A stretch of 64,000 bases of DNA from Oculina patagonica (taxonomy: Eukaryota): contig NC_135766.1 in the NCBI RefSeq assembly GCF_052425735.1, positions 24,118,001 through 24,182,000 of the forward strand, written 5' to 3'. Positions 1 through 25,044 of this stretch are shown piece by piece. The translations under genes were made by a program, and so were the position numbers. The notes beneath the pieces were generated by a model that was not told where the DNA came from, did not search any database, and worked only from the letters and a program-made list of their open reading frames with translations. Numbering within the stretch: the first letter of the stretch is position 1; each line of letters begins with the position of its first letter.

Positions 1-69
1 GTTTCACAAATTATTCTTTTTAGCTCCAATTATGCCAAAAATTATGCTAGCACAATCTATAAAAGCCTA
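1..69. mobile_element. Right end of a hAT-like MITE (truncated by the window edge)
   Basis: Ends in AGCACAATCTATAAAAGCCTA, nearly the same terminus as the complete element at 5485-5993; the match to the right palindrome arm begins immediately after it. Confidence 0.6.
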
Positions 70-416
70 CTTGGAAACGCGCGTGGATGAAATCAAGTGT
101 ATTAAACTTTCGCGCGCGTAAAATAAGAAGACTTTTGGACATCCATGAAGCAACTGTGCTCAGCATATAATTGCGTCCAATAAAATTATCTAGAATCTTC
201 CACTATTCATCTCATTGCTCCTTCAGATGATATTCAACAAATATTCTTATCACCAAGCAAAACAATCTTGACGACAAATCGTTTTCTAAAAGCCTCAAAA
301 AGCGCAAAGTTATTTTAATCTTGCTATTTTCTCTTAGCGGTCAAAAAGAAAATTGCAGTTGTTTTACGCTTACTGAAAACCATTGCCATTGACTTCGTTC
401 TGTGTTGTGAACTCCC

Positions 417-1705
417 CCCGACGTTACTAATCGAACAGTTCGGTAATCGAACTTGATCGAACTGAATCGAACTTAATCGAACGATTCGGTTCGATTAGTT
501 CGATAATCGAACAGAATCGAACCCAAAACTTTGTGTGAGAGAGTTCGATTCCGTTCGATTTCCGAACTAATCGAACCAAATCGAACTTAATCGAACACAA
601 AAGACAAATCTTAAATTCACCCTCATACAACCAGATAATTGAACAGTCTGTCTAAGTAACAGTAATAAATGAATAAATTTTTTATTTATGGACTTTCGGC
701 AAAAAAACCCGAAACGCAAAGTTCAACAGACAATAGAAAATAAATCCTCCTTCACTCTAGTTCTATTTCATGTTATCAACCTATGGAGTCCCAAGTAGTC
801 TGCGTAGCTGGCGATTTCGTCGGAAAGCACGCGTGGGAGATTACTGCGAAGACTCGCCTTCTTTCACTTTGCCGATTGTTTCTAGCGACCTTGCCGCTCA
901 CTCGCTCCCCAACAAAACCGTCAGCTGCGCACACTATAACCCAAGCAAAATATTATAAACTGAAACAATGCTAAAAAACTGTTTTCAAGTTATTTGACAT
1001 AAGTTAACCTAACTGCAAAAAACCCGTCCTTGAAAGCGGAATTCGTTACTTAAGATTATGAGATCTAGATAACGTGCGATAAATGAAACCGCCATATTTG
1101 CAAGGAAAGCAATTAAAATTAGCAACAGAGTCGTTAACAGTATGGCAATCTCTAAAAAAAATTCAGCGATTTCAGCACATAAAAGGTCGCTCAACAGCTT
1201 AACACATGCAAAAAATCCTTCAATGAACTTAAACATGTTCACATCTACAGAGGTGGCTAGAAAAAACAATATAATGATCAATATCAATTCGGCCGAGAAA
1301 TAAAAATAAAGTGAAAGTTGCTGATTTTTGTTGTCCATCTTTTGTTTATTTGGTTGTACAAAATCGGGCTCCTGAAGACCACCTGCGTCAATTCAATTTA
1401 TTTCCTGTCGGCTCCGTCATTGCCAATATAATATCCAGATATATCTGTCACGTAGATATCCTCCGCTCGGCCTCGGTGCTAAAAACTGTTTGTGTTTAAG
1501 GCAAAATTTTCATCCATTTTCCATGATTTTCAAATCGAACCCAGTCGAACTTAATCGAGCCTAATCGAACTTAATCGAACGTTCGATTTAGTTCGATTAC
1601 TCAAAATTTTTTGTGAGAGTTCGATTCTGTTCGATTACCGAACTTAATAAATCGAGTAAGTTCGATTAATCGAACGTTCGATTTGGTTCGATTAGTAACG
1701 TCGGG
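417..1705. mobile_element. Non-autonomous TIR DNA transposon, 1289 bp, 6-bp TSD
   Basis: TIRs CCCGACGTTACTAATCGAAC / GTTCGATTAGTAACGTCGGG, subterminal ATCGAAC/GTTCGAT arrays, TSD ACTCCC (411-416, 1706-1711); empty site with a single copy in the right arm (16261-16266). Confidence 0.9.
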
Positions 1706-2294
1706 ACTCCCACGAATTATACTAAATTACCAGATCTTTACAAAGGTCGTACAAAAGGTCGTTTATTAATCTGAAATTTGATGAAGCATACGGTACTTGA
1801 CTATTCCTGATAAGCCAAAGGAAAGATTATCTCTTTATTTGTTTGCGCGAAAACGAAATTCGAAAATGATGATATGAAACGCACGCAAATTTAATAGTCA
1901 CATACATGTTCGATCTTGATTGCTATGTGAATATTCACACCTTGATAAGTACTTTGGGTTGTTAATTGCCCTGTATAAGCAAACACAAAAAGATCAACGG
2001 GATCAACGCCATGTTATTTTAATTAGCTGAGTCAATTCATCACTGAAAGTTAAAGTTTCTTTTGTGAGTTAGCACATGTGTTTATCAGCGCGCAAATGAA
2101 ATCAGTGGCCACTTCAACTAACAAATGATAAAAAGAAAAGATTTGAAATGGTACTCTCATTATGAAAATTATCTTAATGTATGGTCACGCTTATCAAACA
2201 GGCACTCCTAATTTTGTAAACTCGTACCCAAGCTATTCACATAATCATTCCTGAACACCTTTCTATTTTCTACTTCCAACCTGACTAAATTACG

Positions 2295-3701
2295 TTAAAC
2301 ATATGCAATCGTATCGCCATTTGTTTCTTGGTCAAGATTTAAAGTTATGTCAGCGGGTCTTTGTGTTGTAGTGTCTGAGTCGTCGTCGACATCTTCTTGC
2401 GTTTCAAGGCTCAGCAGAGAAGATTCAGAGTTCATTTTAAACATTTTCCCCTCGTAATAATCCTTAGCGGAAACCTGGGGGGTGGGAACTGGACGGGTGT
2501 CGTCGAAGACTGAAAAATCCACCCTGTACCTGCCCGACTTCCATCTACTCTCATCCGTAGTGCTTACAAACTCGTGACCCCAGAGGATTTCATCCGCAAT
2601 ATAAGACGTTTTGGCTTGAACAAGCATGCTAGTCGCTTCTACCGTTCCTTCAAGGACCACGACAATCTCGAAATCGCAGTTGAGAACATCTTTTGGGTGC
2701 ATTTCGAAGAGGGGGCTATTCTCGTCGATTACGTGAACTATTGTAAGCGGTAGAATCAGAAATAAAGTACTGTCTTCTAGCAAGTTTTCTTCGCAAGACC
2801 AGTCTATTCCGACGGGCAGTTTTTGTTGATAAAACGGAAGTTCGATCCCTTCTCGAGTTGTTCTTTTTCGAAAGAGGTGCACTCTAACGACAGCTTCTAA
2901 AATCTGACTCTTTCGGACGTCACCCACTCGAAACATGAGGCACATTTTGCCGTCACGCACTGCGACAACAGCGTTGCGAGAAAAAAGAATGGTTTCCGCG
3001 CGATTGCGCGGGCGAGAAAGCTTGGCGAAAATCAAACCCAGCATAAACGCGCCGATTATAAACCCAATAAGCGATTGTACATTGAGTAGAACGACGGCTT
3101 CGGGGCAGCTAGGGGTGATTTGTCGCCCACCGTAGCCAATAGTCGTTTGTGTCTCCAGAGAAAACAGGAACGCGCTTGTAAACGAGTCAACGTTATCGAC
3201 ACAGACATTATCGCCACGGAAGTATGTTATAAGCCACCAGAAAAATCCAAAGCCCAGCCAGCTGCCACAATACATAGTAATGTAGACAAAAGTAATCCAT
3301 CGCCATTTAGAGTCAATCATTGTCGTAAACAAATCGGAAATGTACATGCCATGTTTCTGCGGTACGTGTGACGCGACGACTTTCAACCCCCCATGTTTTC
3401 CTACGAGGCGGCGTTTCTTGACGTGTTTCGTCGACAGAACTCGCTTCATTCTGCTCTTTTTTCCCCTTGCCGCTCTTGTTTTGTTCTTTCGGGGATGACT
3501 GGTCCCATTTGGCTGTTGTATTTTCACTTCTTTTAGCTCGTACTTTTCGCCACCGCCTTCGCCGGAGTCGCCGTTCATGTTTGAGTAGTCGGACGATGAT
3601 GCCCCAGAGTCTGAATATTCGTCTTCGTCCCTCAGGCCCGCCTCTCGTCTTTGCCAGTGTCTTCTCACTTGGTTACTCGACCTGTCTGAGTAAGACGACA
3701 T
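2295..3701 (-). CDS. Inward-rectifier potassium channel (Kir/KCNJ family), copy A1, intronless CDS, 468 aa
   Basis: DLFTTMIDSKWRW slide helix, TM1, CVDNV..CP disulfide pair, ETQTTIGYGGR filter, RDGKMCLMFRVGD, EIVVVLEGTVEAT, SYIADEILWGHEF. First ATG at 3701 (the track starts at an upstream TTG). Confidence 0.95.
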   Translation of the reverse strand: MSSYSDRSSNQVRRHWQRREAGLRDEDEYSDSGASSSDYSNMNGDSGEGGGEKYELKEVKIQQPNGTSHPRKNKTRAARGKKSRMKRVLSTKHVKKRRLVGKHGGLKVVASHVPQKHGMYISDLFTTMIDSKWRWITFVYITMYCGSWLGFGFFWWLITYFRGDNVCVDNVDSFTSAFLFSLETQTTIGYGGRQITPSCPEAVVLLNVQSLIGFIIGAFMLGLIFAKLSRPRNRAETILFSRNAVVAVRDGKMCLMFRVGDVRKSQILEAVVRVHLFRKRTTREGIELPFYQQKLPVGIDWSCEENLLEDSTLFLILPLTIVHVIDENSPLFEMHPKDVLNCDFEIVVVLEGTVEATSMLVQAKTSYIADEILWGHEFVSTTDESRWKSGRYRVDFSVFDDTRPVPTPQVSAKDYYEGKMFKMNSESSLLSLETQEDVDDDSDTTTQRPADITLNLDQETNGDTIAYV

Positions 3702-5231
3702 CTTTAATAACTGACCGCTTGTTATGTACAAACTAAACGGTGAACGAAAGACGAATCAAATGAAACTCGAAAACTCCGCTTGAAAACACTTGTGACTTCC
3801 CGTCAGCTTGGCATAAACATGTGACATCGACAAAGGTCGACAAAACGAGACCTTCGCCTGCTGTGACGATATTTTGGTCAATATTTAAGCCAGTGTTAAA
3901 ATCCTATTTTTAACAGATAATTGTGAAAGTATGCAACTCGATCAAGACTAATATTTTATCAAATCTCTAGAGCAAGTGTGAAAAAAAGCTACCAAAAACC
4001 GCGACAAAAACGTGAAACATGGACCATTTTACAGCTATCATACCTGAAAAGTTTTGTTCTTCGTTGTCAGAAGTATACACAACGTTTAATTTTGTTTGTC
4101 AATATTCGCTGCAGTTCGTTCATCGCTATGCTCACTTGTTCATTGTGTTATTGTACTTAGGTTTGCCCGTGGGATTTTACTGAATACCGTGATTTATTTG
4201 CATTCTCTATAAATTTGTATACATTTGCATGTGGAGTGTTTTTTACCCCAACGTGACCTATTCACTTTCTGAGACAATGCGTTGTCACGTAGTCTCACCG
4301 TATATAAGACACAAGAGAAAAATAAACAGCACCACATAAAAGAACTGCTCGATAGCTCTTATTTTAAAAGTTATGTACTGGAACGTACTGACTCCAATTT
4401 TAACACTTTTGGAAGTAAGTGGGTGAGGAAATCGGTCTACACCGTACTTGTATCTGATAAAGTTTCGCCACCTTACAGACCGTAAAACAATTTCACTTTT
4501 TCACATGTTCACATTAGTATGAGAACGGACCAGAACGGAAAGTTTGTAATTAGATTTCTATTATTCATTTGCGCGGATAAAATTAGAAACGACGGGATTT
4601 TCAAAACTATGAAACTTTCAGATTTAGAAAAAGAAAATGAAGCGTCAGTTTTCCCGCCTTCTTGTAGAAAATAAAAAAGCCAAAAGAAGAGCAAGACGTT
4701 TACATGAAAATGTCAGGAAATAAATTGTATTGTTGTTCATATCGTAAGCAATCAGTAGAAGTGCCTAGTGATTGTACCGTCGATATAGTAAGCGGTTTTA
4801 TTTAGTAAAACTATTAATAACCACTAGTAATTCGTGAATTTGACAACCTCGTTTACAGGGCTTTTCCTTTGGTAATCTGGAACGCCCGTTCCAAATTACC
4901 AAGGAAAAAGCCCTGGGAACGAGGTTATTAGTACTTTTACTTAGCTTACAATATTTAACAGTACAATAACAATCATCAGTATTTTTACTGAAGCGCTTAG
5001 ATCATCAATCCAAAGAGCAAAAGGACGCAAATGTCATATGGCGAAAATGAAAAAATAATGACGGTAATTTTTTTTAAAGAACTTAACTTGATTTAAAAGA
5101 TTTTAAGTAGGCGCTACCCCATGCAGCAAACTAAGCAATGGCATCATTGCCATACAGTGTTGCAGTTTCCACGACTTATCAGTGTTGTTTTACAAAGCTA
5201 CACATCCCCGTTTTCGGCGTTACATAACAGT

Positions 5232-6435
5232 CATCCTCTTCCCCAGGGCCACGCGTAATTTTTTTAAATGACATGACGTAACGGTAAATAATATGATTTT
5301 TTTTGATTGGCTGATAAAAACTGCATGCGTAATTAGGTAAGAGAATTGAACCCCTTTATAATAAGTGATTCCACGACATAGCAGCTTCCATTTCGCGGGA
5401 GAAGATTGCCTGTTGCATCATCGTCCAAAAACCGCTGACTACATCGTGAATTGATCGCTTTGCAAGTTGTGAGAGCATCGCTACTAGGCATGAATAGATT
5501 GTGCTAGTAAATTCAGGAAAAGTTGCTTCACAATATACCTTAAAGTTGCTCTAAAGTTGCTCAAATATCAAAAAGTTGCCACCAAAATTTAGAAAAGTTG
5601 CTTGCTCTAGAGTCGTTTTGTTTTAGATAAATACTCAAAACGTGTTTGTTTGTTTGTTGCCATTTAAAAATTTTCATTAAATATTCTTACAATCATTAAA
5701 AGAGTCCAAAAAGCCATTGTTATATGAGAAATAGAAATACTTTGTTGTAATCAATATGCTCTTTAAACTCAACATAATTTCAATAATAGATAAAAAATAA
5801 AATAAAAAATAAAAAAAGATAAAAATCCCTCGAAATGAAACGACTTTTATGGTTTGGATCGGTTTTATATCAATTTGTTGCTCAAAAGTTGCCAAGGAAG
5901 GCAAAAGTTGCCCTAGGTTGCTGGTACTACAAAAAGTTGCTCAAGACGCTAAAAGTTGCTCAAACGTTGCTGAGCACAATCTATTTATGCCTAATCGCTA
6001 CTCGGTCCCAGACCTCGTTTCTTCCCCCCCCCCCTGGTGTAAGTTATCAACGACTTGAATTGCCAAAACCAGCGGGCAAAACACAAGGATAGTCGTTCTA
6101 CTCAACGACTACAGCAGGCAGGGCGGCTTCCTGTTCCATTTCTTGTTTCTTGATATCCTCCGACACTCCGACAGTTGTAGCAAGGATTGCTGTACAGCTC
6201 TTTCGAACGCCAAACTCAAATCTCGTATCTTCTTTCAAAATTCGCTTTCTTCTCGTCTCAGTGAGCCCCAGCCTTCCCCTTTCTTTTACTGAGCAGACAC
6301 AGACGAACATTTATGCAGTGGACATGCGCTACCGGATGTCGTGGATTTTACGACATCCGGTATTCAGTGTTACCAGAGCCCTCCGTTTCGCCGACCACGT
6401 GACCAAAAGAAACGGAGGCTCTGGAAACGAGAATG
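5232..6435. mobile_element. TIR element with 9-bp TSD (left-arm copy)
   Basis: Imperfect TIRs CATCCTCTTCCCCAGGGCC / GGCTCTGGAAACGAGAATG; flanks CATAACAGT (5223-5231) and CATGACAGT (6436-6444); mirror copy at 11582-12705. Confidence 0.65.
5485..5993. mobile_element. hAT-type MITE nested in the 9-bp-TSD element
   Basis: TIRs TAGGCATGAATAGATTGTGCT / AGCACAATCTATTTATGCCTA, perfect 8-bp TSD ATCGCTAC (5477-5484, 5994-6001), AAAGTTGC subterminal repeats. Confidence 0.9.
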
Positions 6436-6670
6436 CATGACAGTCGTCTCAGGTAATGTATACTGAACTTTGAGCAGCGTAGAGAGTTATTAGACAGACT
6501 TAAGTACTACTGAAATGAAGGCTGTACGCCACAGCACATATTCGTACACAAGCACATATGCTGTTGATCGTGCTTGTGCTTATGTTTCTGCTTATAGCCA
6601 GTGAAAACCAGCCTTAAAGTACTAAATCTAAAACGAGATCTAGAGTTATAAAAGTGAGTAGTTTTGTATT

Positions 6671-6914
6671 AGGGGTATCAAATGGTCTTTGCGAGCATTT
6701 GGGAGCATGCGAGCACAGCGTTTTTCTTTGCGAGCACGAGCATTGACAAAAATTAGCCTTGCGAGCAACGAGCACTTTTCAAAATCCTACCTCCACTAAA
6801 AACCGAGCATGCGAGCACTTGTAAAAATGTGCGAGCACGAGCAAACGAGCACCCACTAAAATTTTGCGAGCATTGCGAGCACTGCGACATTTTGAGGGAC
6901 CATTCTTGACTCCT
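6671..6914. mobile_element. MITE with GCGAGCA internal repeats, 6-bp TSD (mirror at ~11101-11345)
   Basis: Termini AGGGGTATCAAATGGTC / GACCATTCTTGACTCCT, TSD TGTATT (6665-6670, 6915-6920). Confidence 0.75.
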
Positions 6915-7153
6915 TGTATTTGGCGTGAATAAGCAAATTATTTTCTATTTTTCAATAGTTAGAGAAAAAGTAGCAGCATTCTGGCGTTTGCCGTTACTTG
7001 AACGTGGTGCTTTATCTCTCTATTGACACATGATCCTCACCGTGAGCGCACCAATTTAAGCAACTGGGGAAAAGAAGCCTGAAAAATTTCAAGGCTGCAA
7101 CGGGAAAACACTTGTTAGGGAATATTAAGCCATCTAACTCTTGTTAATTGATG

Positions 7154-7473
7154 CCCGGGGGGGGACTCCCATATTAAAGGGACGGGGATGCTCGTCGGAA
7201 ATTTTGAAAAGAACCCCTAAAAAGAGACCAATCTGTGCGTGGCTCAAGCTATTGTAGACCCCTAAAAGATACCAAAATTCTGAGAAAAAAACTTATATTG
7301 GTATATTTCTTCGTGTGTAACCCTAAACGAGACCCTGACGGCTAAAAATATTGTCATTTTCTTGCATTTTCCCCAGAACACCCTAAGCGAGACCCAAAGT
7401 CCGAAATTTATACCCCTAAGCGAGACGACGAGCATCCCCGTCACTCTCATATGGGAGTCCCCCCCCCCCCCGG
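7154..7473. mobile_element. MITE with poly-G/poly-C TIRs, 8-bp TSD
   Basis: TIRs CCCGGGGGGGGACTCCCATAT / ATATGGGAGTCCCCC..CCGG, TSD AATTGATG (7146-7153, 7474-7481). Confidence 0.9.
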
Positions 7474-8044
7474 AATTGATGTTTGTTAATTTTTTCATGG
7501 TTACGTGAAAAAGATAAGTCTGTACTGGAAGGATGGAGGATATTGCCTTGAAATAAATTTAGCATGGATTTGTGATTATGTTAGTATTCATAGAAGCGTT
7601 TGCTTTGTTCTGCGGAAAGCAAGATCGACTGAAAAAAAATTGAGGAAAGGAAATAAATGTAGCAAACACCGGATGTGTTAAGTTGGTAATGGAACCATGC
7701 CAAAATGAAAACAAAACATTCTTAAACAAAAAGTTCGATAAAACGGGAAAAGCACCTGCTAAATGAAGGAACAGGGCGGAAGTCACGAACGTTTCAAGAC
7801 TCGACTTTTTGCCTCTATGTTGTAACACTTTCGTTCGCAGCAGGAACAAATGTTTTCTTATTAACGTATCTTCCAAACGAAAAGATGCCATAGGAACAGC
7901 AGAGAGTTGTGAACAGGAAGGTATTGTAATTACGTACTCAATGCCAAATTCTCAGAACTTCCATTTAATACATTGAGTGTATGGAAATTAATAAAGAGAG
8001 GAACTGGCATTTTAACTTGTCGGAAGATGTTGCGTAGTCCTATA

Positions 8045-8912
8045 AAACCATCAATGGATCACTTAAATTAACAAACTATTTCATTAAACTCATCAAAACA
8101 AGTCTAAACATCAGTATTTCCCTAGCTATAACCTTTCAGAGCACGAGCTGTAAGGTTGCTGTGTTATTTACTTAAATATTTTCACCCTAAGGGACTTTCC
8201 TTTTAACTGTCGAAATAAATTAACCACCTGCAATATTTTCAGATGATATTGGTAATCGGCTTAGAGAGAACTAGGTGCTTTTGCGAAGTTTACAAAACTA
8301 TAAACATATTGGTATTAAAGTTTGTCAAAAAATTGTTACCTATTTTTTTTAAACTATCAATGGATCTCTTAACAAACTATTTCATCAAACCCAAACCCAA
8401 ACAAGTCTATATGTCAGTACTTCCTCTATAGCATTTCAGAGCGCGAGCTTTAAGGTTGCTGTGCTATTTACTTAAACATGTTCACCCTCAGGGGCTTTTC
8501 AGTATTCAACATTAGATTTGAAATTAATTAACAACATACAATGTTATCAGATGATATTGGTAATCGGCTTGGAGAGAAATAATGTAGGTGCTTTTGCTAA
8601 CTTTAAAGTTATATTGGTATTTAAAAATGTTGCCTTATTCTTTCAAACCATCAATAAATCTCTTAAATTAACAAACTGTTTCATCAAGCTTATCCAAACA
8701 AGTCGCAATATCAGTATTTCTTTAACCCTCAGAGCGTAAGCTTTAAGGTTGCTGTGTTATTTACTTAAAAGATTTCACCCTAAGGGGCTTTTATTCAACA
8801 ACAATTTTGAAATAAATTACTGAACCACATACAATATTTCCATGTGATATTGATAATAAGCTTGGGTAGAAATATTAAACGTAGGTGCTTTTGCGAACTT
8901 TACAAAACTATA
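8045..8912 (+). repeat. Three diverged tandem copies of a ~300-bp unit
   Basis: AAACCATCAATGGATC..TAAGGTTGCTGTG..GATATTGGTAATCGGCTT..TAGGTGCTTTTGC recurs at ~8045, ~8351 and ~8645; a single inverted copy lies at ~10015-10275. Confidence 0.8.
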
Positions 8913-9224
8913 TACAGAGTTGGGTAACAATAATTTAACTCGTATATATAAATAACTTTTATGACTCTATGTGACAATGTAGGAATTCAACTACTGACTT
9001 CGAAAAGCTCTTTCCAGAATAGACTTAATTTCAATACGTCATAATGTTGTCTATTATTATCATAATTGATCATGGGGTTCCATATTTGTTTTTACAGTGA
9101 AAGTTATTGAAGAATCACGAAATAAAACGTTATCTCAGTTTTTGTCTTTTAATAGTTTAAAAGAGAGGTTAGGGTAATTTGAATTTGTGTAAGCTTTGGG
9201 CCATCATTGATGACTAGCTGTCAC

Positions 9225-9420
9225 CCGTTACCTATCTTAGCTCTAACAGGATTTTTTCTAGAAAGCGCGCTAAGAACCACGCACGGGATCTGAACCCGTT
9301 TTGTCTTTGTTTTTCAACTGAAGACATTATTTTTTACTTCAAATAATCAAAACTACCCTCATGCCACACATTTAGCGCGCTTTCTAGAAAAAATCCTGTT
9401 AGAGCTAAGATAGGTAACGG
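9225..9420. repeat. Perfect 49-bp inverted repeat (foldback/MITE) in the palindrome spacer
   Basis: 9225-9273 is the exact reverse complement of 9372-9420. Confidence 0.9.
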
Positions 9421-9451
9421 TATCCTTTCTTTTCACTCAAATAGACCTCAG

Positions 9452-9720
9452 ACAATCTTTGACAAAAGTAGTTGACACATTAACTTCGCTCTGCGGTTTT
9501 TATGACAAATTTAACACTAGTTTTTAAATTTCATGACTGTCTGTTGTTTCTCCCCCCATCCAATGTTGTAAAATGGTAGCAAAGGACTTCTGGAAACAAA
9601 CTACAACATTGATTGGGGGGAAGGGGGTTGGAAAGGTGGGGCAAAAGGATGGAATTGGTCCATATAACAAAAAATAAGGGCGTAAATTAACAATGGGTCA
9701 ACACTTTTGTCAATGATTGT
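9452..9720. mobile_element. MITE in the palindrome spacer
   Basis: TIRs ACAATCTTTGACAAAAGTAGTTGAC / GTCAACACTTTTGTCAATGATTGT; internal CCCCCCATCCAATGTTGTA / TACAACATTGATTGGGGGG inverted pair; no clear TSD. Confidence 0.65.
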
Positions 9721-11581
9721 AGTCATCAATGATGGCCCAAAGCTTTATATATTACACTATGAAATTCAAATTACCCTAACCTCTCTTTTAAACTATTAAA
9801 TGACAAGAAACCGTGAGATAACGTTTTATTTCGTGATTCTTAGCTTTCTCTGGAAAAACAAATATGGAACTCCATTATCAATTATGATAATGATGGACAA
9901 CATTATCACGTATTGAAATAAACACTATATTCTGGAAAGACATTTTCGAAGTCAGTAGTTGAATTCCTACACTGTCGCATGGTAGCCTGTGTTGAGTCAT
10001 AAAAGATATTTATATAGTTTTGTAAAGTTCGCAAATTAAAGCACCTACAGTGTTTCTCTCCAAGCCGATTACATATACCAATATCATCTGAAAATATTGG
10101 AGGCGGTTAATTTAAGGCGAGAGTTGAATGAAAGCCCCTTAGGGTGAAAATGTTTTTAACACAGCAACCTTAAAAGCTTACGCACTGAAGGGTTGAAGAA
10201 ATACCGACATTTAGACTTGTTTCGATGAGTTTGATGAAGTGGTTTGTTAATTTAAGTGATCCATTGATGGTTTTAAAGGTCTACGCGACATCTTCCGACA
10301 AATTAAAATACCAGTTCGTCTTTTTATTTATTTCCATACACTCAATGTAATGGTGGTTCTGAGAATTTGGCACTGAATACGTAATTACAATATCTTCCTG
10401 TTTACAACTCTCTTCCGTTCTTATGACATCCTTTCGTTTGGAAGATACGTTAATGATAAAACATTTGCTCCTGCTGCGAATAAAAGTGTTACAACATAAA
10501 CGCAAAAACTAGTCGAGTCTTGAAGCGTTCGTGACTTTCGCCCTATTACGTGTTCCTTCATTTAGCAGGTGCTTTTCCCGTTTTATCGAACTTTTTGTTT
10601 AAGGTCGTTTTTGTTTTCATTTTGGCATGGTTCCATTACCAACTTAACACATCCGGTGTTTGCTACATTTATTTCCTTTCCTCAATTTTTTTTCAGTCGA
10701 TCTTGCTTTCCGCAGAACAAAGCAAACGCTTCTATGAATACTAACATAATCACAAATCCATGCTAAATTTATTTCAAGGCAATATCCTCCATCCTTCCAG
10801 TACAGACTTATCTTTTTCACGTAACCATGAAAAAATTAACAAACATCAATTCCGGGCCCGGGCATCAATTAACAAGAGTTAGATGGCTTAATATTCCCTA
10901 ACAAGTGTTTTCCCGTTGCAGCCTTGAAATTTTTCAGGCTTCTTTTCCCCAGTTGCTTAAATTGGTGCGCTCACGGTGAGGATCATGTGTCAATAGAGAG
11001 ATAAAGCACCACGTTCAAGTAACGGCAAACGCCAGAATGCTGCTACTTTTTCTCTTACTATTGAAAAATAGAAAATAATTTGCTTATTCACACCAAATAC
11101 AAGGAGTCAAGAATGGTCCCTCAAAATGTCGCAGTGCTCGCAATGCTCGCAAAATTTTAGTGGGTGCTCGTTTGCTCGTGCTCGCACATTTTTACAAGTG
11201 CTCGCATGCTCGGTTTTTAGTGGAGGTAGGATTTTGAAAAGTGCTCGTTGCTCGCAAGGCTAATTTTTGTCAATGCTCGTGCTCGCAAAGAAAAACGCTG
11301 TGCTCGCATGCTCCCAAATGCTCGCAAAGACCATTTGATACCCCTAATACAAAACTACTCACTTTTATAACTCTAGATCTCGTTTTAGATTTAGTACTTT
11401 TAAGGCTGGTTTTCACTGGCTATAAGCAGAAACATAAGCACAAGCACGATTAACAGCATATGTGCTTGTGTACGAATATGTGCTGTGGCGTACAGCCTTC
11501 ATTTCAGTAGTACTTAAGTTTGTCTAATAACTCTCTACGCTGCTCAAAGCTCAGTATACATTACCTGAGACGACTGTCATG

Positions 11582-12705
11582 CATTCTCGTTTCCAGAGCC
11601 TCCGTTTCTTTTGGTCACGTGGTCGGCGAAACGGAGGGCTCTGGTAACACTGACTACCGGATGTCGTAAAATCCACGACATCCGGTAGCGCATGTCCACT
11701 GCATAAATGTTCGTCTGTGTCTGCTCAGTAAAAGAAAGGGGAAGGCTGGGGCTGACTGAGACGAGAAGAAAGCGAATTTTGAAAGAAGATACGAGATTTG
11801 AGTTTGGCGTTCGAAAGAGCTGTACAGCAATCCTTGCTACAACTGTCGGAGGATATCAAGAAACAAGAAATGGAACAGGAAGCCGCCCTGCCTGCTGTAG
11901 TCGTTGAGTAGAACGACTATCCTTGTGTTTTGCCCGCTGGTTTTGGCAATTCAAGTCGTTGATAACTTATATTACACAATTCGATTCGTTTGGAACTCAT
12001 TGAATTGCATGGCTGATAGATGTGTTCTTGTTGTGTCGTCTCTACACGAAATATTATCTGACGGCAGATAGAAAAGTTCATGTAGAATCCAGAGGAATTG
12101 GAGTTATAGTCGCGCTGTTATAGTGTTTAAACATGGAGTCGAGGATATCATCAGCTGATAACATTCCGACGGTTGATGATACTGTGAAATTTATTTTTGG
12201 CCATGCGGAGGTATTGCAGAAATTCAGAACTAAAAAAGCCGCTGATCGACGAGGTACCATTCTATTGAGCAGCGGTAAGAAATATCACATTGAATTTCAA
12301 AATCTTCATGTAATTCATGAACTCCATTTTGTGTGTATATCTTGTATAAGCTAAGTTGATAGTGCAAATGTTTGCAATATTTTTAATGCAATAAAAAGTA
12401 CAACCGAGTTACACCTTACAAGTGATGTATTTGTCATTCGTTCATAGACAAAGGTCTGCTTCGTGAATACGTTATTCCAACAAACTCCCAGTGTTATTCG
12501 GTCTTTTTCCGGTATCATTTTTTTTCGCTCCGCTTCATCTTCAATTGTTTCGATGACCGGAAGTATAACCAAAATTGCGTAGAAGCGTTTCGTTTTTTAC
12601 CCAATTACGCATGCAGTTTTTATCAGCCAATCAAAAAAAATCATATTATTTACCGTTACGTCATGTCATTTAAAAAAATTAGGCGTGGCCCTGGGGAAGA
12701 GGATG
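11582..12705. mobile_element. TIR element with 9-bp TSD (right-arm copy, different interior)
   Basis: Flanks ACTGTCATG (11573-11581) / ACTGTTATG (12706-12714); ends mirror 5232-6435. Confidence 0.65.
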
Positions 12706-13042
12706 ACTGTTATGTAACGCCGAAAACGGGGATGTGTAGCTTTGTAAAACAACACTGATAAGTCGTGGAAACTGCAACACTGTATGGCAATGATGCCATT
12801 GCTTAGTTTGCTGCATGGGGTAGCGCCTACTTAAAATCTTTTAAATCAAGTTAAGTTCTTGAAAAAAAATTACCGTCAATATTTTTTCATTTTCGCCATA
12901 TGACATTTGCGTCCTTTTGCTCTTTGGATTGATGATCTAAGCGCTTCAGTAAAAATACTGATGATTGTTATTGTACTGTTAAATATTGTAAGCTAAGTAA
13001 AAGTACTAATAGCCAGTGACTCAAGACTATGAGTCAAATTCA

Positions 13043-13126
13043 CAACCTCGTTCCCAGGGCTTTTTCCTTGGTAATTTGGAACGGGCGTTCCAGTTTACCA
13101 AAGGAAAAGCCCTGTAAACGAGGTTG
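13043..13126. mobile_element. 84-bp hairpin MITE, 9-bp TSD (mirror at ~4844-4926)
   Basis: CAACCTCGTTCCCAGGGC..GCCCTGTAAACGAGGTTG flanked by TCAAATTCA twice; same terminal family as 21408-24881. Confidence 0.85.
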
Positions 13127-14267
13127 TCAAATTCACGAATTACTAGTGGTTATTAATAGTTTTACTAAATAAAACCGCTTACTATATCGACGGTACAATC
13201 ACTAGGCACTTCTACTGATTCCTTACGATATGAACAACAATACAATTTATTTCCTGACATTTTCATGTAAACGTCTTGCTCTTCTTTTGGCTTTTTTAAT
13301 TTCTACAAGAAGGCGGGAAAACTGACGCTTCATTTTCTTTTTCTAAATCTGAAAGTTTCATAGTTTTGAAAATCCCGTCGTTTCTAATTTTATCCGCGCA
13401 AATGAATAATAGAAATCTAATTACAAACTTTCCGTTCTGGTCCGTTCTCATACTAATGTGAACATGTGAAAAAGTGAAATTGTTTTACGGTCTGTAAGGT
13501 GGCGAAACTTTATCAGATACAAGTACGGTGTAGACCGATTTCCTCACCCACTTACTTCCAAAAGTGTTAAAATTGGAGTCAATACGTTCCAGTACATAAC
13601 TTTTAAAATAAGAGCTATCGAGCAGTTCTTTTATGTGGTGCTGTTTATTTTTCTCTTGTGTCTTATATACGGTGAGACTACGTGACAACGCATTGTCTCA
13701 GAAAGTGAAAAGGTCACGTTGGGGTAAAAAACACTCCACATGCAAATGTATACAAATTTATAGCGAATGCAAATAAATCACGGTATTCAGTAAAATCCCA
13801 CGGGCAAACCTAAGTACAATAACACAATGAACAAGTGAGCATAGCGATGAACGAACTGCAGCGAATATTGACAAACAAAATTAAACGTTGTGTATACTTC
13901 TGACAACGAAGAACAAAACTTTTCAGGTATGATAGCTGTAAAATGGTCCATGTTTCACGTTTTTGTCGCGGTTTTTGGTAGCTTTTTTTCACACTTGCTC
14001 TAGAGATTTGATAAAATATTAGTCTTGATCGAGTTGCATACTTTCACAATTATCTGTTAAAAATGGATTTTAACACTGGCTTAAATATTGACCAAAATAT
14101 CGTCACAGCAGGCGAAGGTCTCGTTTTGTCGACCTTTGTCGATGTCACATGTTTATGCGAAGCTGACGGGAAGTCACAAGTGTTTTCAAGCGGAGTTTTC
14201 GAGTTTCATTTGATTCGTCTTTCGTTCACCGTTTAGTTTGTACATAACAAGCGGTCAGTTATTAAAG

Positions 14268-15674
14268 ATGTCGTCTTACTCAGACAGGTCGAGTAACCAA
14301 GTGAGAAGGCACTGGCAAAGACGAGAGGCGGACTTGAGGGACGAAGACGAATATTCAGACTCCAAGGCATCATCGTCCGACTACTCAAACATGAACGGTG
14401 ACTCCGGCGAAGGCGGTGGCGAAAAGTACGAGCTAAAAGAAGTGAAAATACAACAGCCAAATGGGACCAGTCATCCCCGAAAGAGCAAAACAAGAGCGGC
14501 AAGGGGAAAAAAGAGCAGAATGAAGCGAGTTCTGTCGACGAAACACGTCAAGAAACGCCGTCTCGTAGGAAAACATGGGGGGTTGAAAGTCGTCGCGTCA
14601 CACGTACCTCAAAAACATGGCATGTATATTTCCGATTTGTTTACGACAATGATTGACTCTAAATGGCGATGGATTACTTTTGTCTACATTTCTATGTATT
14701 GTGGCAGCTGGCTGGGGTTCGGATTTTTCTGGTGGCTTATAACATACTTCCGTGGCGATAATGTCTGCGTCGATAACGTTGACTCGTTTACAAGCGCGTT
14801 CCTGTTTTCTCTGGAGACACAAACGACTATTGGCTACGGTGGGCGACAAATCACCCCTAGCTGCCCCGAAGCCGTTGTTCTACTGAATGCACAATCGCTT
14901 ATTGGGTTTATTATCGGCGCGTTTATGCTGGGTTTGATTTTCGCCAAGCTTTCTCGCCCGCGCAATCGCGCGGAAACCATTCTGTTTTCTCGCAACGCTG
15001 TTGTCGCAGTGCGTGACGGCAAAATGTGCCTCATGTTTCGAGTGGGTGACGTCCGAAAGAGTCAGATTTTAGAAGCTGTCGTTAGAGTGCACCTCTTTCG
15101 AAAAAGAACAACTCGAGAAGGGATCGAACTTCCGTTTTATCAACAAAAACTGCCCGTCGGAATAGACTGGTCTTGCGAAGAAAACTTGTTAGAAGACAGT
15201 ACCTTATTTCTCATTCTCCCGCTCACTATAGTTCACGTAATCGACGAGAATAGCCCCCTCTTCGAAATGCACCCGAAAGACGTCCTCAACTGCGACTTCG
15301 AGATTGTCGTGGTCCTTGAAGGGACGGTAGAAGCGACTAGCATGCTTGTTCAAGCCAAAACGTCTTATATTGCGGATGAAATCCTCTGGGGTCACGAGTT
15401 TGTAAGCACTACGGATGAGAGTAGATGGAAGTCGGGGAGGTACAGGGTGGATTTTTCAGTCTTCGACGACACCCGTCCAGTTCCCACCCCCCAGGTTTCC
15501 GCTAAGGATTATTACGAGGGGAAAATGTTTAAAATGAACTCTGAATCTTCTCTGCTGAGCCTTGAAACGCAAGAAGATGTCGACGACGACTCAGACACTA
15601 CAACACAAAGACCAGCTGACATAACTTTCAATCTTGACCAAGAAACAAATGGCGATACGATTGCATATGTTTAA
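14268..15674 (+). CDS. Inward-rectifier potassium channel (Kir/KCNJ family), copy A2, intronless CDS, 468 aa
   Basis: Same motifs as copy A1; 6 amino-acid differences; ATG at 14268. Confidence 0.95.
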   Translation: MSSYSDRSSNQVRRHWQRREADLRDEDEYSDSKASSSDYSNMNGDSGEGGGEKYELKEVKIQQPNGTSHPRKSKTRAARGKKSRMKRVLSTKHVKKRRLVGKHGGLKVVASHVPQKHGMYISDLFTTMIDSKWRWITFVYISMYCGSWLGFGFFWWLITYFRGDNVCVDNVDSFTSAFLFSLETQTTIGYGGRQITPSCPEAVVLLNAQSLIGFIIGAFMLGLIFAKLSRPRNRAETILFSRNAVVAVRDGKMCLMFRVGDVRKSQILEAVVRVHLFRKRTTREGIELPFYQQKLPVGIDWSCEENLLEDSTLFLILPLTIVHVIDENSPLFEMHPKDVLNCDFEIVVVLEGTVEATSMLVQAKTSYIADEILWGHEFVSTTDESRWKSGRYRVDFSVFDDTRPVPTPQVSAKDYYEGKMFKMNSESSLLSLETQEDVDDDSDTTTQRPADITFNLDQETNGDTIAYV

Positions 15675-17716
15675 CGTAATTTAGTCAGGTTTAAAAACAG
15701 TAGTAAAAACAAAGAAGGTGTTTGGGAATGATAATGTGAATAGCTTACGAGTTTACAAAATTAGGAGTGCGTGTTTGATAAGCGTGACCAGTTAAGATAA
15801 TTTTCATAATGAGAGTACCATTTCAAATCTTTTCTTTTTATCATTTGTTAGTTGAAGTGGCCACTGATTTCATTTGCGCGCTGATAAACACATGTGCTAA
15901 CTCACAAAAGAAACTTTAACTTTCAGTGATGAATTGACTCAGCTAATTAAAATAACATGGCGTTGAACCCGTTGATCTTTTTTTGTTTGTTTATACAGGG
16001 CAATTAACAACCCAAAGTACTTATCAAGGTGTGAATATTCACATAGCAATCAAGATCGAACATGTATGTGACTATTAAATTTGCGTGCGTTTCATATCAT
16101 CATTTTCGAATTTCGTTTTCGCGCAAACAAATAAAGAGATAATCTTTCCTTTGGCTTATCAGTATAGTCAAGTACCGTGTATGCTTCATCAAATTTCAGG
16201 TTAATAAACGACCTTTTGTACGACCTTTCGTAAAGATCTGGTAATAATAGTGTAATTTGTGGGAGTTCACAACACAGAACGAAGTCGATGGCAATGAAAA
16301 CAACTACAATTTTCTTTTTGACCGCTAAGAGAAAATAACTAGATTAAAATAACTTGGTGCTTTTTGAGGCCTTTTAGAAAATGATTTGTCGTCAAGATTG
16401 TTTTGCTTGGTGATAAGAATATTTGTTGAATATCATTTGAAGGAGCAATGAAATGCAAAATGTAAGATTCTAGATAATATTTTTATTGGACGCAATGATT
16501 TGCTGAACACAGTTGCTTCACGGGTGTCCAAAAGTCTTCCAATTTTACGCGCGCGAAAATTATATTCGATTCCATCCACGCGCGTTTCCAAGTGTGGTAT
16601 GTTGCGAAGTTTGTAGGTAAACAGAAAGAATTAAGATTGTTTTGTTTAGCTTGATGTTACTGATAAGTTTAAATCCCTGAAGCAAGTCAATTCAAGTGCC
16701 TTGTTTGTATGTTGTGCATCTAAAAACCTCTCTCTGTTTTATAAACACGATGTTATTTTCGTTCTCGTTCGCAACGATCGAAATCAAGTATGAAAACCAG
16801 GCGAAAACGAAACACAGCTCTGTGAAACTGAAAATTTGTGACTTATGCAAGAATAAAATAAGGATAGACGAAATGATATTTCAGCTCTGTTCACTGAAAT
16901 GGTTTTCACCGAGCTCCTTTATATTTGAGTGAAATATTTTTCTCACACGTACAGAAATATATTTGTAAGATCAGAAGTTTGATCCGAAAAGTTGAAATAA
17001 ATTAAAAGTTATTTTTTGAGAAAGTCGCGAAACGCTTTTATTCGGATTGATGTGAACCTTGCCAGACGCCTGTCTGGCTGGCTGGTGGGGCCTAGCTTGA
17101 AAAAGGAGGCGTGGCTCATTTAAACCCGAAGAGGGGGTATAACAAAACAATAGGCTTTTCGAGCCTGGTTAAGTTCGAGGCATTCGGTTAGTTAGGGTGC
17201 AGCGCGAAAAATGGGATTAGTGCAGGAAACGGCGAGAAAAAAATGGCGAGGAGCTGCGTAGGTCTCCCTTATTTTTCGCTCACCGTTTTTCGTGCTGCTT
17301 CCCAACTGACCAAACGTCTGGAACAGGCTACAAAATAACGGTAGACGTTATTTGTCGTAACGCAACGCTTCTCGCAGTTCTCACCACTGGGGAGTACTGT
17401 AAGCGTTGCGTGACAAACCAAATGAAGGCTGAGAAGGAAGAAAGGAACCGAAGGGGCTAAAAACAGCGCTTCCACATAGTGGCTAATATGGTGGCGTATC
17501 AGTTCAGTCTAGTTCAATCCTTGGTTCGGGGGGAGAGAAGGAAATAGGGTGATAAAAGTAAAATTTAGGAAAAATTAGGTAAAATCTCCTTTAATACTTG
17601 GTACCCAGGCTTAGCCATGCGGTCAACGTAACGCGCAGAGAAACTGGGCACAAGTCAGAAGAGCGTGACCTCTCTTTTGTCACAGCCGTCACAGAGGATA
17701 AAAACATTGGTCAAAT

Positions 17717-19453
17717 ATGGCATCTGACAACTCGAGTATTGATCGCGATGCCGACACAAGTGATGCAAATGATGCAGATGAATCATTTGTAAGAATAGAA
17801 CCATTCTCTTCGGATAATATGGTCAGCATGCGCTCATCAAAGCGTCAAGGAAATCAAGCGGCATTTTCCCTTCAGCCGCCATGTTCTGAATCACCAACCT
17901 TCGATCAGCACACTCGATGGCCTGTTCGCGATCGTTCCAGGAAGAGGCGTTTAGTCAGTAAATACGGATCGCTTAAAGTGTCAGCTAGGAATGTACCACG
18001 GAAAACGAAGCTTTACTTCGCTGATATTTTCACTACTATGATCGACCTTCGCTGGCCTTGGGTGATCTTGATATTTTGTGGCTCGTATGTACTGTCGTGG
18101 GTCGTGTTTGGTTTGTTGTGGTGGCTTCTGGTTGCAGTGCGAGGACCTTCTGTTTGTGCCACGGAGGTAAATCAAAACAAATTACAGGTTTACTTTCTGT
18201 AATTTTTACTGACATATTCTGAATACATGGCAGTGTGTTCTGAAAGGGGGCGTTGTTGTGTGTTTCAGTATGGTAATATGAAACCACATGCGGGCAGGGG
18301 GGGGGGGGGGGGGGGTCACCTCATATAGCACTGGTCACAGTACTATATCTTTATTTTGTGCCAAGAAAAAATTGCCCAGTTCACATGTAATTGTTGAAAA
18401 TTATGAAAGGAACTCCTAAACGACGCCAGAGTAACAATTTGTTGGCACGACTCGACTTTGTGTACACCTAAAAGGTACCTATTCAAAAATGACAAAAAGT
18501 TCCTCTGAATTTTTTTTGGCCAAAAATCCTTTCTAATGGTACTAGGATAATTGTAATTGTTTTCATTAAGTTTTATTAAACAATTAAACTACTAAATGTA
18601 TGTTTAATTAAACAGTTATATGTAGATATTCAGTCATAGTAAACTCAACCCTATCTTTATTTGCATGATATGATAGCATATTATTTATAATATTTTTTTC
18701 CAGGTTGACGATTGGGTATCTGCATTTCTGTTTTCAATCGAAACCGAGCAAACCATTGGTTATGGAAGCAGAGCAATAACAAACAAATGTCCAGAGGCTG
18801 CAATCATATTGCAAGTACAATCTCTAATTGGATTAATTTTGGATGCTTTTATGCTTGGTTTGACGTTTGCTAAGCTTTCACAGCCTCGAGAACGCATGAA
18901 GACTGTGATGTTTTCAGAGTATGCAGTCATTGCACCTAGAGACGGAAAAATGTGTCTGATGTTTCGAGTTGGAGACATTCGGAAGAGTCAAATTGTTGAC
19001 GCTTCGATACGGATGCAGCTTTTTAGGAAGTGGAAAACCATGGAAGGAAGAGACATCCCTTTCTATCAGGAGGATCTCAAAGTGTGTTATGACTGGCGGA
19101 ATCCAGACAATGACTTCAGAAATGAGCTATTTCTTCTGTTACCCATGGTGATAATCCATGTGATAGATGAAAAAAGTCCTTTTTATGAAATGTCTCCTGA
19201 TAAACTTAGAGAATCAGACTTTGAAGTTGTTGCAGTTTTGGATGGAATCGTCGAACACACAGGAATGAACACACAGCCCAAGACATCATATACAAGTGAC
19301 GAAATCTTATGGGGCTATGACTTTGTGGATGTCATCGACAGAAAGTTTCTTGAGAATGGCAAATATTTTGTGGATTTTTCAAAGTTTAACGAGATCGTTA
19401 ATGTGGAGGTACCACAATGCTCTCCAAAAGAGTTTTATCAGATGCAGCATTAA
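17717..19453 (+). CDS. Kir channel B, join(17717..18166,18704..19453), 399 aa
   Basis: Exon 1 ADIFTTMIDLRWPW..CATE then GTAAAT; acceptor TTTTTCCAG; exon 2 VDDWVSAFLFSIETEQTIGYGSR..RDGKMCLMFRVGD..EILWGYDF; phase-0 intron keeps the frame. Confidence 0.93.
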
Positions 19454-20348
19454 TATTATGTAGCTATATATCAAACACAAGGGAGAGTGTTTCATCAGTA
19501 AAGAGTTGAAAATACAATGCACAGTGGTGTGTTTTTGACAAACTTTCAGGTGTATGAAAATATCATTTTGATGACACTCTTTGAAATGTTTGATGTTATT
19601 TCGGAATTGGAAGTAAACCTGATATGTAAACCAAGTAATAAAATTGTAAAAATCTTATGCTAATAAGAACAGATTTCCAAACCACCTTTACAATTTTCTT
19701 TGTTTTTACTTGACGAATTATTAATGAGTTTAAGAAGACAAAGACTAATACCCCATTCACAACATCATGTTTAAAAGCTGTTTTAATAATTAAACATGCT
19801 TAATGGTGTTTGTCAGCTTTAAATTTAGCCCAATGAAAGCACAAGTTAGAGCTTCTTAAAGATGAATTCCAGTCCTTACTGCGCAATCTCGGCTGCAATG
19901 TTTATGTGAGCCCACACGAAGGGAATGTTTACAAGCAAAACTAAAAATTCCACGACAAACTTACCTTTTTCTTCATTATTAACGCCAGATATCCTTGCAG
20001 AACAAATAATAACGAGTAGAAGAACCTTGACGCTATTTCAAACCGACGTTTTAGCTCATCGGAACTTCTTGAACGAAACGAACTGTAATGGCGGACTAAA
20101 AAACGTCATGTATGCTGTCACCGAAGTGTAACGTTTCAACGAATTCAAAACAAAAACGTAAACAAACCCCGAGTCTGCGCAGTACGGACTGGAAATCATC
20201 TTTAACGAACGTGTATTTCCTGCATTTTGTGAACATTTGTGATCAAAACGTTTTTGGTTTTTAATTTCCCAAACAAAAGGCCATCACCAACAAGCCTTAA
20301 CCACAGCTATTTTTTAGTAAAACCTCTCCTTACTGACACCCCTATAAT

Positions 20349-20552
20349 ATGGGTGGTGAATGGTCCTTCAAAAAAAGGTGAGTCTTGCAGAATTTTAGTC
20401 AAATTTCAGGGGTCTCATCGTCTTGAATTTTTCTTTGATGCCTTCTCAGAGTCTTGATTTCTTTTGCAAGGCTATAAAAAGGTCTCGGGCTCGCAGAAAA
20501 GATATCAGTCTCGCTGTCCCGCAAAGTCTCGCATTTACCACTCAACACCACT
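20349..20552. mobile_element. MITE, 6-bp TSD (same family as 45824-46016)
   Basis: GGTGAATGGTCCTTCAAAAAA..GTCTCGCATTTACCACTCAACACC shared with 45824; TSD TATAAT. Confidence 0.7.
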
Positions 20553-21407
20553 TATAATACAGACACGCCCCAAATCAAACAGTTCACCTGGTTCCAGAAA
20601 GAGACAAATATTCATATAAACTCTACCTCGTAATAAGGTTGAGGGGGGGGGGCAGGAGGATAGGAGCCAGAGAGAAAAGGGAAGGGAGGTGGAGAAGTTG
20701 GGAAGCCGGATTCCCAAGGTGGTGGGAACCAAAAAAAATCCGCAAAATAAATGATGAGACAAAGAGGAGGGAACCACTACGGAAAGGGACAGGAGGAAGG
20801 GAAGTTGGGCAAAAGGTACGAGAAGCAGAGTAAGAGGTACAGGAAGTGGGAGGTAAGCAGACCCCTTGTCCCCCAATCTTGTCCTCGGGGCTCTTTTCCC
20901 TTCAGAGCAGGAGAGGGGGTTCCCCACCCTCTTCCGCTCTGAAGAGAAAAGAGCCCATACCAAGGGACGAGGTTGCTGCCCCCCCCCCTCCCACACACAC
21001 CCTTCCAAGGACACCATGCTTTCCTGTCCCTTTGGTGTAAAGTCAAGTGGATTCAAGTCATTAGAAGGCTTTACCTTCAGAGGGGGGGGGGGTGCATTCC
21101 GAATTTTCATTGTAAATTTACCCCAGGGAGGGGGGAGATTACCCCCATGCACTCAAATCTTCTCAAAACAAAAACCTAACTCACTCTCGTCCCCAGAGCC
21201 GCTTGTGCCTCTTAGCTGGCTGAGCCTGGGGCACGAGGAACAAGTGGCTCTGGAGACACATGATTAAATTGGCCAGATTTTTAACAGAGATTTTAAATAT
21301 AACCAATCAAATCAACCGCTTTAAAATCCCTTTGTTGTAGGAGATTTTAAAACGGCTGATATGATTGGTTAGATATCTGGCCAATCAAATCTGTAGCGGC
21401 TCTGGGG

Positions 21408-24400: not shown

Positions 24401-24881
24401 TTATTCAATGAGATGCAAAAGAGTGGCCGGGTATATGGCCATAATATGGATATGGATATTTCATAATTTCAGTTACAACTTCACCTTATGTAAAAGTTTG
24501 TAGAACAGAGTGAACTTGGTCATATAAAAGCGAAAATGTATGAGTTTAGTTAAAGCTTTTAGGGTCAAGGTTATGTGTATCACTGTAATAAGTTAGAATG
24601 AATTATAAAGCACATTTTGAAATCCCTGAAATAATATCTATGCTTTACGAAGTAATCACTGCCTCCTGCATGAAGTTTACGCCCTCAAACGCCGTCGAAG
24701 AGTCAATTCGAATTCAAACTGGACCGCCATTTTGTTTTGGCTTCTCTGAAAAGTCACGTGACAAAAATCTCCAAGATTTTTGGAGATTTTGTACCACGTG
24801 ACCCAGCCTTTGCCAGGGTCTTCTCTCGACGAGCCGCCATTTTGAAAACTCGTCGCCGAGAAGGCCCTGGGGACGAGGTTG
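21408..24881. mobile_element. 3.47-kb non-autonomous TIR transposon with 9-bp TSD, nested in a related MITE (21182-24899)
   Basis: 26-bp perfect TIR CAACCTCGTCCCCAGGGCCTTCTCGG, TSD GCTCTGGGG (21399-21407, 24882-24890); no transposase ORF seen. Confidence 0.88.
22644..23000. mobile_element. MITE, 8-bp TSD, nested
   Basis: TIRs CCCAG..GGGGTACT..TTTCAAGTGACGGGGATGAT / ATCATCCCCGTCACTTGAAA..AGTACCCCCTGGG; TSD CTGTTTGC. Confidence 0.85.
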
Positions 24882-25044
24882 GCTCTGGGGAGGAGAATGC
24901 CTCGATTTCAGGATGACACTCGACCCATGCCGTCGCAAATAAAACTTGTTCCAGGCCTTCGCAGTAAATTGCTATTTGGCTCGAACATTTGGCTCTTCTT
25001 GGCAGCAACAATGGTAAAAGGATGCAGTCTTGAGTATTAAAGAC

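Follow-up and report, generated by a model that had tools for sequence, protein, structure and literature searches.

Mirrored Kir gene clusters in a coral genome

The 64,000-nucleotide stretch of the Oculina patagonica genome analyzed here (NC_135766.1, positions 24,118,001 to 24,182,000, or G000:C9:24118001-24182000; hereafter, the window) contains two inverted copies, or arms, of a cluster of predicted inward-rectifier potassium channel (Kir) genes, separated by a spacer of 503 bp (9217-9719). Using inverted blastn searches and MAFFT alignments that included 30 kb upstream of the window, we determined that the inverted homology runs from about position -21995 (G000:C9:24096006; negative positions lie to the left of the window) to 9216 in the left arm, of which 1-9216 is within the window, and from 9720 to 30683 in the right arm. 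Large palindromes are delimited as two inverted arms of more than 8–10 kb around a spacer, and both arms exceed this size: the left arm is ~31 kb long, insertions counted, and the right arm ~21–23 kb.

Kir1, Kir2, and Kir3 are found on each arm, giving three Kir genes per arm, and a protein search of the whole assembly (529 Mb, as in all whole-assembly searches below) revealed Kir paralogue exons in mirrored pairs well beyond the window's left edge. We consider it likely that the whole, ~55 kb in length, is a genuine palindrome of this stony coral, apparently located on an autosome, and that the window represents its inner third. The structure is far larger than was estimated in a preliminary description, prepared from the sequence letters, which had taken the segment at 70-410 as the outer end of the arm. 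This segment is indeed diverged (7.6%), but the arms extend to -21995 on the left and to 30683, or 32904, on the right.

The left copy of Kir1 (2295-3701, minus strand) is an intronless coding sequence (CDS) of 468 aa from its ATG, identified by its open reading frame (ORF) and by the Pfam domains IRK and IRK_C; the right copy (14268-15674, plus strand) differs from it by 35 nt and 6 aa. Both copies match PF01007 (IRK, E = 6e-45) and PF17655 (IRK_C, E = 2e-58), and both translations contain a TIGYG selectivity filter; by these features, Kir1 is predicted to be an inward-rectifier K+ channel. Its best named homologues are anthozoan. The right-arm copies of Kir2 (17717-19453) and Kir3 (25030-29463) are both on the plus strand, and each has two exons. 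A DNA-level search of the whole assembly detected no copy or haplotig of Kir1 beyond the two arms, and the nearest paralogues identified by protein search have at most 56% protein identity.

Between Kir2 and Kir3, there is an interval that lacks homology between the arms: 10.5 kb on the left (-16200 to -5661; C9:24101801-24112340) and 3.5 kb on the right (21369-24880), both of which are probably arm-specific transposon cargo. At its outer end, the right arm has a tandem duplication of ~1.6 kb (29081-30683 and 31305-32904), the second copy abutting an N gap at 32905 and containing a truncated second Kir3 exon 2 (ORF 31352-31687), the C-terminal 111 aa of which are identical.

Divergence between the arms is mosaic

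Arm mismatch fractions were obtained from a piecewise MAFFT alignment and are given in right-arm coordinates. In total, 2.4% of the aligned columns are mismatched, corresponding to 97.6% identity between the arms, and the divergence changes abruptly from block to block, between 0.2% and 15%. The dispersion index, computed over fixed 100-nt windows, is 9.2, with 79 of the 168 windows free of mismatches and 21 of the 168 having eight or more; heterogeneity among the blocks, which were defined post hoc, is G = 693 (df 16). Rather than the uniform identity that would have contradicted the preliminary description, the windowed alignment reveals the mosaic that had been noticed by eye.

The arms are strongly diverged beside the spacer, as had been described. 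The mismatch is 11.5% in 9720-10005 (compared with left 8939-9216) and 11.4%, plus indels, in 10006-10556 (compared with left 7768-8309), while left 8640-9216 has an overall mismatch of 15.9%. The inner left arm at 7768-9129 is old and rearranged, with 11–19% mismatch and many indels; its partner in the alignment is the old inner right arm at 9822-10556. Three left-arm stretches match right 10006-10278 by blastn, and Tandem Repeats Finder reported no array in the inner arms.

Outward of a boundary at ~7768, the non-coding DNA is nearly identical between the arms and appears to have been homogenized recently, with mismatches of 1.0% in 10557-10856 (left 7469-7767), 0.63% in 10857-11969 (left 6040-7159), and 0.67% in 12597-14267 (left 3702-5340), the last of these lying upstream of Kir1. 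In the 1.1 kb preceding the ATG, where few differences had been noted, we counted six mismatches and one indel. We rejected the possibility that the near-identical blocks are a transposon, as 3780-5340 and 6040-7159 have no copies in the whole assembly besides the two arms. A very high-copy short repeat is present at 11100-11299, inside one of these blocks (word depth 7e4 to 3.6e5, four of four runs).

The Kir1 CDS (14268-15674) has a mismatch of 2.5% and, counted as 35 of 1437 positions (2.4%), is more diverged than its upstream DNA (0.67%), again in agreement with the preliminary description. Beyond it, the mismatch is 10% in 15675-15790 and 1.9% in 15791-16266, and then rises to 7.6% in 16261-16593, 13.6% in 16612-17039, and 13.1% in 17040-17626; together, these last three blocks make up an old intergenic patch between Kir1 and Kir2 (16261-17626, 7.6–13.6%). 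The blocks farther out have mismatches of 0.59% (17627-21368), 3.5% (24881-25237), 0.42% (25238-26442), 2.2% (26443-26942), 0.20% (26943-29941), and 2.6% (29942-30683). The old patches are all at one level, with Jukes–Cantor distances of 0.11–0.15, and therefore fit a single founding duplication.

Colinearity of the arms is interrupted by transposons that occur in one arm each. On the left only, a terminal inverted repeat (TIR) element of 1289 bp occupies 417-1705; over 869 bp (417-1285), at least 20 copies spread over many chromosomes are 100% identical, and the family looks to be currently active. This element was found neither in the right arm nor in the contig of a sister lineage described below. 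Also confined to the left arm are a transposon at 5485-5993, with at least 868 candidate copies, one of them 100% identical, and a miniature inverted-repeat transposable element at 7160-7468 (309 bp, 41-bp TIRs), with more than 2000 candidate copies, the best at 99%. A transposon of another family, with at least 135 candidate copies, the best at 96%, is found only in the right arm (11972-12596). The segments 5341-6039 and 11970-12596 were considered as diverged or inverted homologues of one another; they have no similarity on either strand and represent two unrelated transposons, one per arm.

Age classes along the arms

As an outgroup, we used Logan contigs from a sister lineage (L031-L036), found through a 90% protein cluster, whose Kir1 CDS is 94% identical (dS, the synonymous divergence, is 0.21). 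The sister contig is colinear with the right arm over 13530-17065, where the left arm, the right arm, and the outgroup were aligned three ways, and relative ages were computed from site counts, assuming a clock. In the upstream DNA, the arms differ at four sites and 66 sites are specific to the outgroup, placing the split between the arms at 0.06 of the split between the species. The corresponding counts are 33 and 54 for the CDS (0.42), 17 and 32 for the 3' flank at 15675-16256 (0.36), and 82 and 37 for 16257-17065 (~1.0). In this last stretch, 37 changes are private to the left arm and 42 to the right arm, which describes a star tree, and the age of the old intergenic patch thus equals that of the split from the sister lineage.

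The heterogeneity among these stretches is highly significant (chi2 = 74.9, p = 4e-16), as is the difference between upstream DNA and CDS (Fisher p = 1e-6), and a max-chi-square breakpoint was located near 16190-16200 (permutation p<=5e-4). Along the region, the ratio of arm to species differences varies 37-fold (0.06 to 2.2). Since the upstream block has accumulated 9% divergence relative to the sister lineage, constraint or slow mutation cannot explain its divergence of 0.5% between the arms. The same two arms thus have a split of 0.06 upstream and of ~1.0 in the relic patch, which is the signature of concerted evolution. The preliminary description had called for window-wise trees; our comparison across stretches, made with one outgroup sequence, as the sister lineage is represented by single collapsed contigs, supports patchy homogenization of an old duplication, and the three age classes along colinear DNA are as expected from the inverted duplication with patchy gene conversion that had been proposed. 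In a more distant relative (78% aa identity), Kir1, Kir2, and Kir3 are arranged in the same order, and no mirrored Kir was found within the 17.4 kb upstream, suggesting that the palindrome arose after this relative had branched off.

Coding differences and selection

The 35 differences between the Kir1 copies comprise 28 synonymous and seven non-synonymous changes, the latter in six codons, and 23 of the 35 are transitions. The six amino acid differences include T152S in the first transmembrane segment (TM1) and V218A in the second (TM2). By the Nei-Gojobori method, the arm pair has a dS of 0.095, a non-synonymous divergence (dN) of 0.0064, and a dN/dS ratio (omega) of 0.07, equal to the omega of 0.06–0.08 between species, with no amino acid excess. 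When polarized with three outgroups, the derived changes are 11 synonymous and two non-synonymous in the left copy and 14 synonymous and five non-synonymous in the right copy, three sites being unpolarizable; the non-synonymous deficit holds on each branch separately (binomial p~3e-6). The derived states are interleaved along the CDS (13 left, 19 right). These values support the view that purifying selection has acted on both copies, as the preliminary description had suggested. Its emphasis on clustered synonymous patches fared less well: the densest cluster, at CDS positions 952-1086, has 11 synonymous changes in 45 codons, and a max-chi-square test against between-species substitutions gave p = 0.32, as opposed to p = 0.004 in a post-hoc scan. 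Clustering within the Kir1 CDS is only suggestive.

The other two gene pairs are nearly identical, with 0 of 645 nt differing in exon 2 of Kir2, six of 486 in its exon 1 ORF, and one of 732 in exon 2 of Kir3. In one additional contig (L037, Logan SRR28110921), the Kir1 CDS alternates between states of the left-arm type (L-type, 15 sites) and the right-arm type (R-type, 19 sites), with one site having neither; this contig represents either two paralogues collapsed into a consensus or a genuine recombinant.

The centre of the palindrome

Arm homology stops mirror-exact at 9216|9720. The spacer between these positions consists of an 8-bp filler (9217-9224), a 49-bp perfect inverted copy (9225-9273) of 9372-9420, and, at 9266-9720, a 455-bp fragment of a 1.63-kb tandem-repeat unit. 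The segment 9266-9273 both starts the repeat fragment and is complementary to 9372-9379, TTAGCGCGCTAA being self-complementary, while the 98-bp loop between 9273 and 9372 is not self-complementary. The spacer is high-copy (read depth 1e3-1e4), and long tandem arrays of the 1.63-kb unit are found elsewhere, such as at C12:26561156-26602427 (L039), which has at least 25 copies. A simple insertion model predicts that the left outer flank continues the 1.63-kb unit, and no match to such a continuation was found there.

Two readings of this arrangement were considered. We favor the first, in which the tip of a spacer-less palindrome broke and its repair introduced captured DNA and a snap-back copy, because the arm boundary is also where the repeat fragment ends; break and repair would then be the origin of the 503-bp spacer. 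In the second, which fits almost as well, the arms reach 9273 and 9372 around the 98-bp loop, and the left arm lost 299 bp. Both readings leave an asymmetric centre, flanked by inner arms that are old and have been rearranged.

Directly at the spacer, ~85 bp of the two arms (9130-9216 and 9720-9821) are ~96% alike and the 49-bp pair (9225-9273 and 9372-9420) is 100% alike, far more than the adjacent outward DNA, which is 11–19% diverged. The C12 array ends ~5 kb from another Kir paralogue (C12:26607725-26608843, L005), and more arrays of the 1.63-kb unit are present on C6, on C8, and at 17.02 Mb of C9.

A probable history: an old duplication overwritten by gene conversion

Computation yielded the blocks of divergence, the ages relative to the species split, the evidence of selection, and the transposon assignments presented above; from these results, we infer gene conversion as the process. 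In the history that we consider probable, an old inverted duplication was later overwritten by kb-scale gene conversion from arm to arm. The Kir1-Kir2-Kir3 cluster would have been duplicated once, in inverted orientation, at about the time of the split from the sister lineage. Unconverted relics of this event, now 11–15% diverged, would persist in the inner arms at the spacer, in the Kir1-Kir2 intergenic DNA, and in smaller patches, while the remainder would have been overwritten by kb-scale tracts at different times. Very recent conversion (0.2–0.7%) may account for the 3.7 kb upstream of Kir1 and for the greater part of the gene bodies of Kir2 and Kir3, and conversion of intermediate age, at ~0.4 of the palindrome's age, for the Kir1 CDS and its 3' flank. 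The newest tract would end between 14159 and 14309, near the Kir1 ATG, and in the history proposed here it is for this reason that Kir1 is more diverged than its promoter. Later still, the young arm-specific transposons at 417-1705, 5485-5993, 7160-7468, and 11972-12596 would have broken the colinearity of the arms.

Alternative explanations

We regard it as improbable that the arms are two haplotypes of a single-copy Kir cluster, misjoined head-to-head at the repeat, with the mosaic reflecting variation in allelic coalescence time. A number of observations nonetheless weigh against a palindrome and in favor of such a misjoin. The palindrome fills almost exactly one contig of ~55 kb between two 500-N gaps (-22994 to -22495 and 32905 to 33404), and its inverted junction is attested by the assembly alone, as no read or independent contig bridges the high-copy central repeat: no public-read contig crosses 9100-9720. 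At 12 arm-differing Kir1 sites (14309-14627), sequencing run X1 is R-type at 10, while runs X8 and X9 are L-type at 12 of 12; run X2 is the only one that shows both Kir1 types (14309-14365), a pattern that resembles homozygotes plus a heterozygote. The contig depths lack the 2:1 ratio expected of collapsed arms, Logan contig depth being an unreliable measure. The synonymous-rich differences and the arm-specific transposons are also compatible with alleles.

However, five separate patches are 11–15% diverged, which far exceeds normal coral heterozygosity, and in the outgroup comparison the distance between the two arms equals that between either arm and the sister lineage (37 left, 42 right, and 37 species-only changes). 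Contigs specific to each inner arm are present in Oculina-like runs from four studies, X9 being thin over the left inner arm, and an allelic explanation requires that every sample be heterozygous for the same two ancient haplotypes. Furthermore, the junction is mirror-exact and the loop not self-complementary, so there is no overlap to mislead an assembler, and the assembly has no other Kir1 copy or haplotig. False duplications are marked by divergence in the allelic range and by absence of one copy from some individuals, and this is not what was found here. A search for independent contigs by means of small inner-arm ORFs has none on record.

If the palindrome is real, the samples with a single Kir1 type suggest differences among lineages in how the Kir1 CDS has been converted. 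One sample seems to be R-type in both arms and two L-type in both, the assembled individual having both types. A rather speculative extension, to which we give little credence, is that conversion of Kir1 is ongoing and differs among Oculina lineages or individuals, the palindrome serving as a two-slot store of channel alleles. If so, two distinct Kir1 proteins would be maintained by selection in some populations, or else one of the two would become fixed again and again through drift and conversion.

It is likewise doubtful that, with conversion being real, the coding divergence of Kir1 has been kept by selection against homogenizing functionally diverged proteins. In line with this idea, only the Kir1 CDS, among the three gene pairs, is clearly older than its flanking promoter block, and the recent tract ends within ~110 nt of the Kir1 ATG. 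However, the CDS and the 3' flank share an intermediate age (0.42 and 0.36), for which one neutral tract suffices; omega between the copies is no different from that between species; and other samples appear to carry one Kir1 type.

We find it very unlikely that the diverged patches were imported into one arm of a young palindrome, whether with a third Kir paralogue as the donor in ectopic conversion or through introgression. The densest CDS cluster would suit an imported patch, yet the derived CDS states, those of the cluster included, alternate between the arms, and in the old intergenic patch the private changes are symmetric (37 and 42). A third donor copy was rejected, as the whole-assembly DNA search returned the two arms only and protein identity to the next paralogues does not exceed 56%.

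Least tenable of all is a single recent duplication with a mosaic due to local mutation rate or constraint, such as hypermutability of methylated CpG within the gene body or conservation of upstream regulatory DNA: although the CDS is more GC-rich (47%, compared with 36%) and synonymous sites evolve ~1.5–2 times faster than flanking non-coding DNA between species, just eight of the 35 CDS differences are in CpG context, the upstream block is unconstrained, the Kir2 and Kir3 pairs show that coding sequence as such is not hypermutable, and the 37-fold shift in the ratio of arm to species differences in the outgroup calibration rejects rate effects, CpG or gene-body hypermutation among them.

Comparison with known palindromes

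Large gene-bearing palindromes with arm-to-arm conversion are a textbook feature of mammalian sex chromosomes; to our knowledge, they have hardly been described in early-branching animals. The coral palindrome resembles those of the mammalian X and Y (human Y P1-P8; primate and mouse X) in having inverted arms of tens of kb, a short spacer, paired protein-coding genes, and concerted evolution of the arms. It also shares structural change at the centre of symmetry, where rearrangement is concentrated in primate X palindromes (PMC8327919). One annotation criterion for palindromes is an arm-to-arm identity of more than 99% (PMC8327919). In the coral, some blocks have 99.3–99.8% identity and others 85–89%, and thus, in contrast to mammalian palindromes (>99%), the arms as a whole are 97.6% identical, with a divergence of 0.2–15% depending on the block. 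Conversion in the coral is patchy, and full-age relics remain. Additional differences are that the palindrome is in a cnidarian, where nothing points to sex linkage; that the cargo is an ion-channel cluster instead of testis-expressed gene families; and that no orthologous palindrome was found in the 17.4 kb upstream covered in the relative with 78% aa identity.

Fold-back or hairpin inverted duplications, and their revision by breaks at the centre, are known from yeast, mouse transgenes, and human rearrangements. The mirror-exact meeting of the arms at 9216|9720 is similar to these, and the coral spacer, with its 49-bp snap-back copy and 8-bp filler, resembles the captured filler of centre-break junctions. 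In contrast to them, the left outer flank in the coral lacks the rest of the repeat unit.

Kb-scale near-identical tracts among older DNA, with a CDS under purifying selection, are shared with interlocus gene conversion of young tandem or inverted duplicates. In many described cases of conversion, the coding regions are the most homogenized; in the coral, by contrast, homogenization is most complete in non-coding DNA, and one CDS exceeds its promoter in age. The locus is a non-mammalian example of a gene-bearing palindrome with arm-to-arm conversion that is unusual in two respects, the incomplete conversion and the CDS that is older than its promoter. Incomplete conversion is useful in itself, since full-age relics, intermediate and very recent tracts, and dated transposons are found together at one locus, which thereby offers a direct view of tract lengths, tract boundaries, and the stabilizing role of a diverged centre. 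The locus also holds a caution for coral genomics: collapsing the palindrome, or taking it for two haplotypes, will lead to wrong readings of Kir1 copy number, apparent 'heterozygosity', and dN/dS.

tRNA-like sequences

Two tRNA-like sequences on the minus strand, at 26800-26875 and 58909-58981, match the Rfam tRNA family with 40 and 39 bits, respectively; ARAGORN assigned the pair as Thr-GGT and as undetermined in anticodon. The one at 26800-26875 falls within the right-arm Kir3 intron; it may be a tRNA-derived short interspersed nuclear element (SINE), and it probably has a mirror copy in the left arm.

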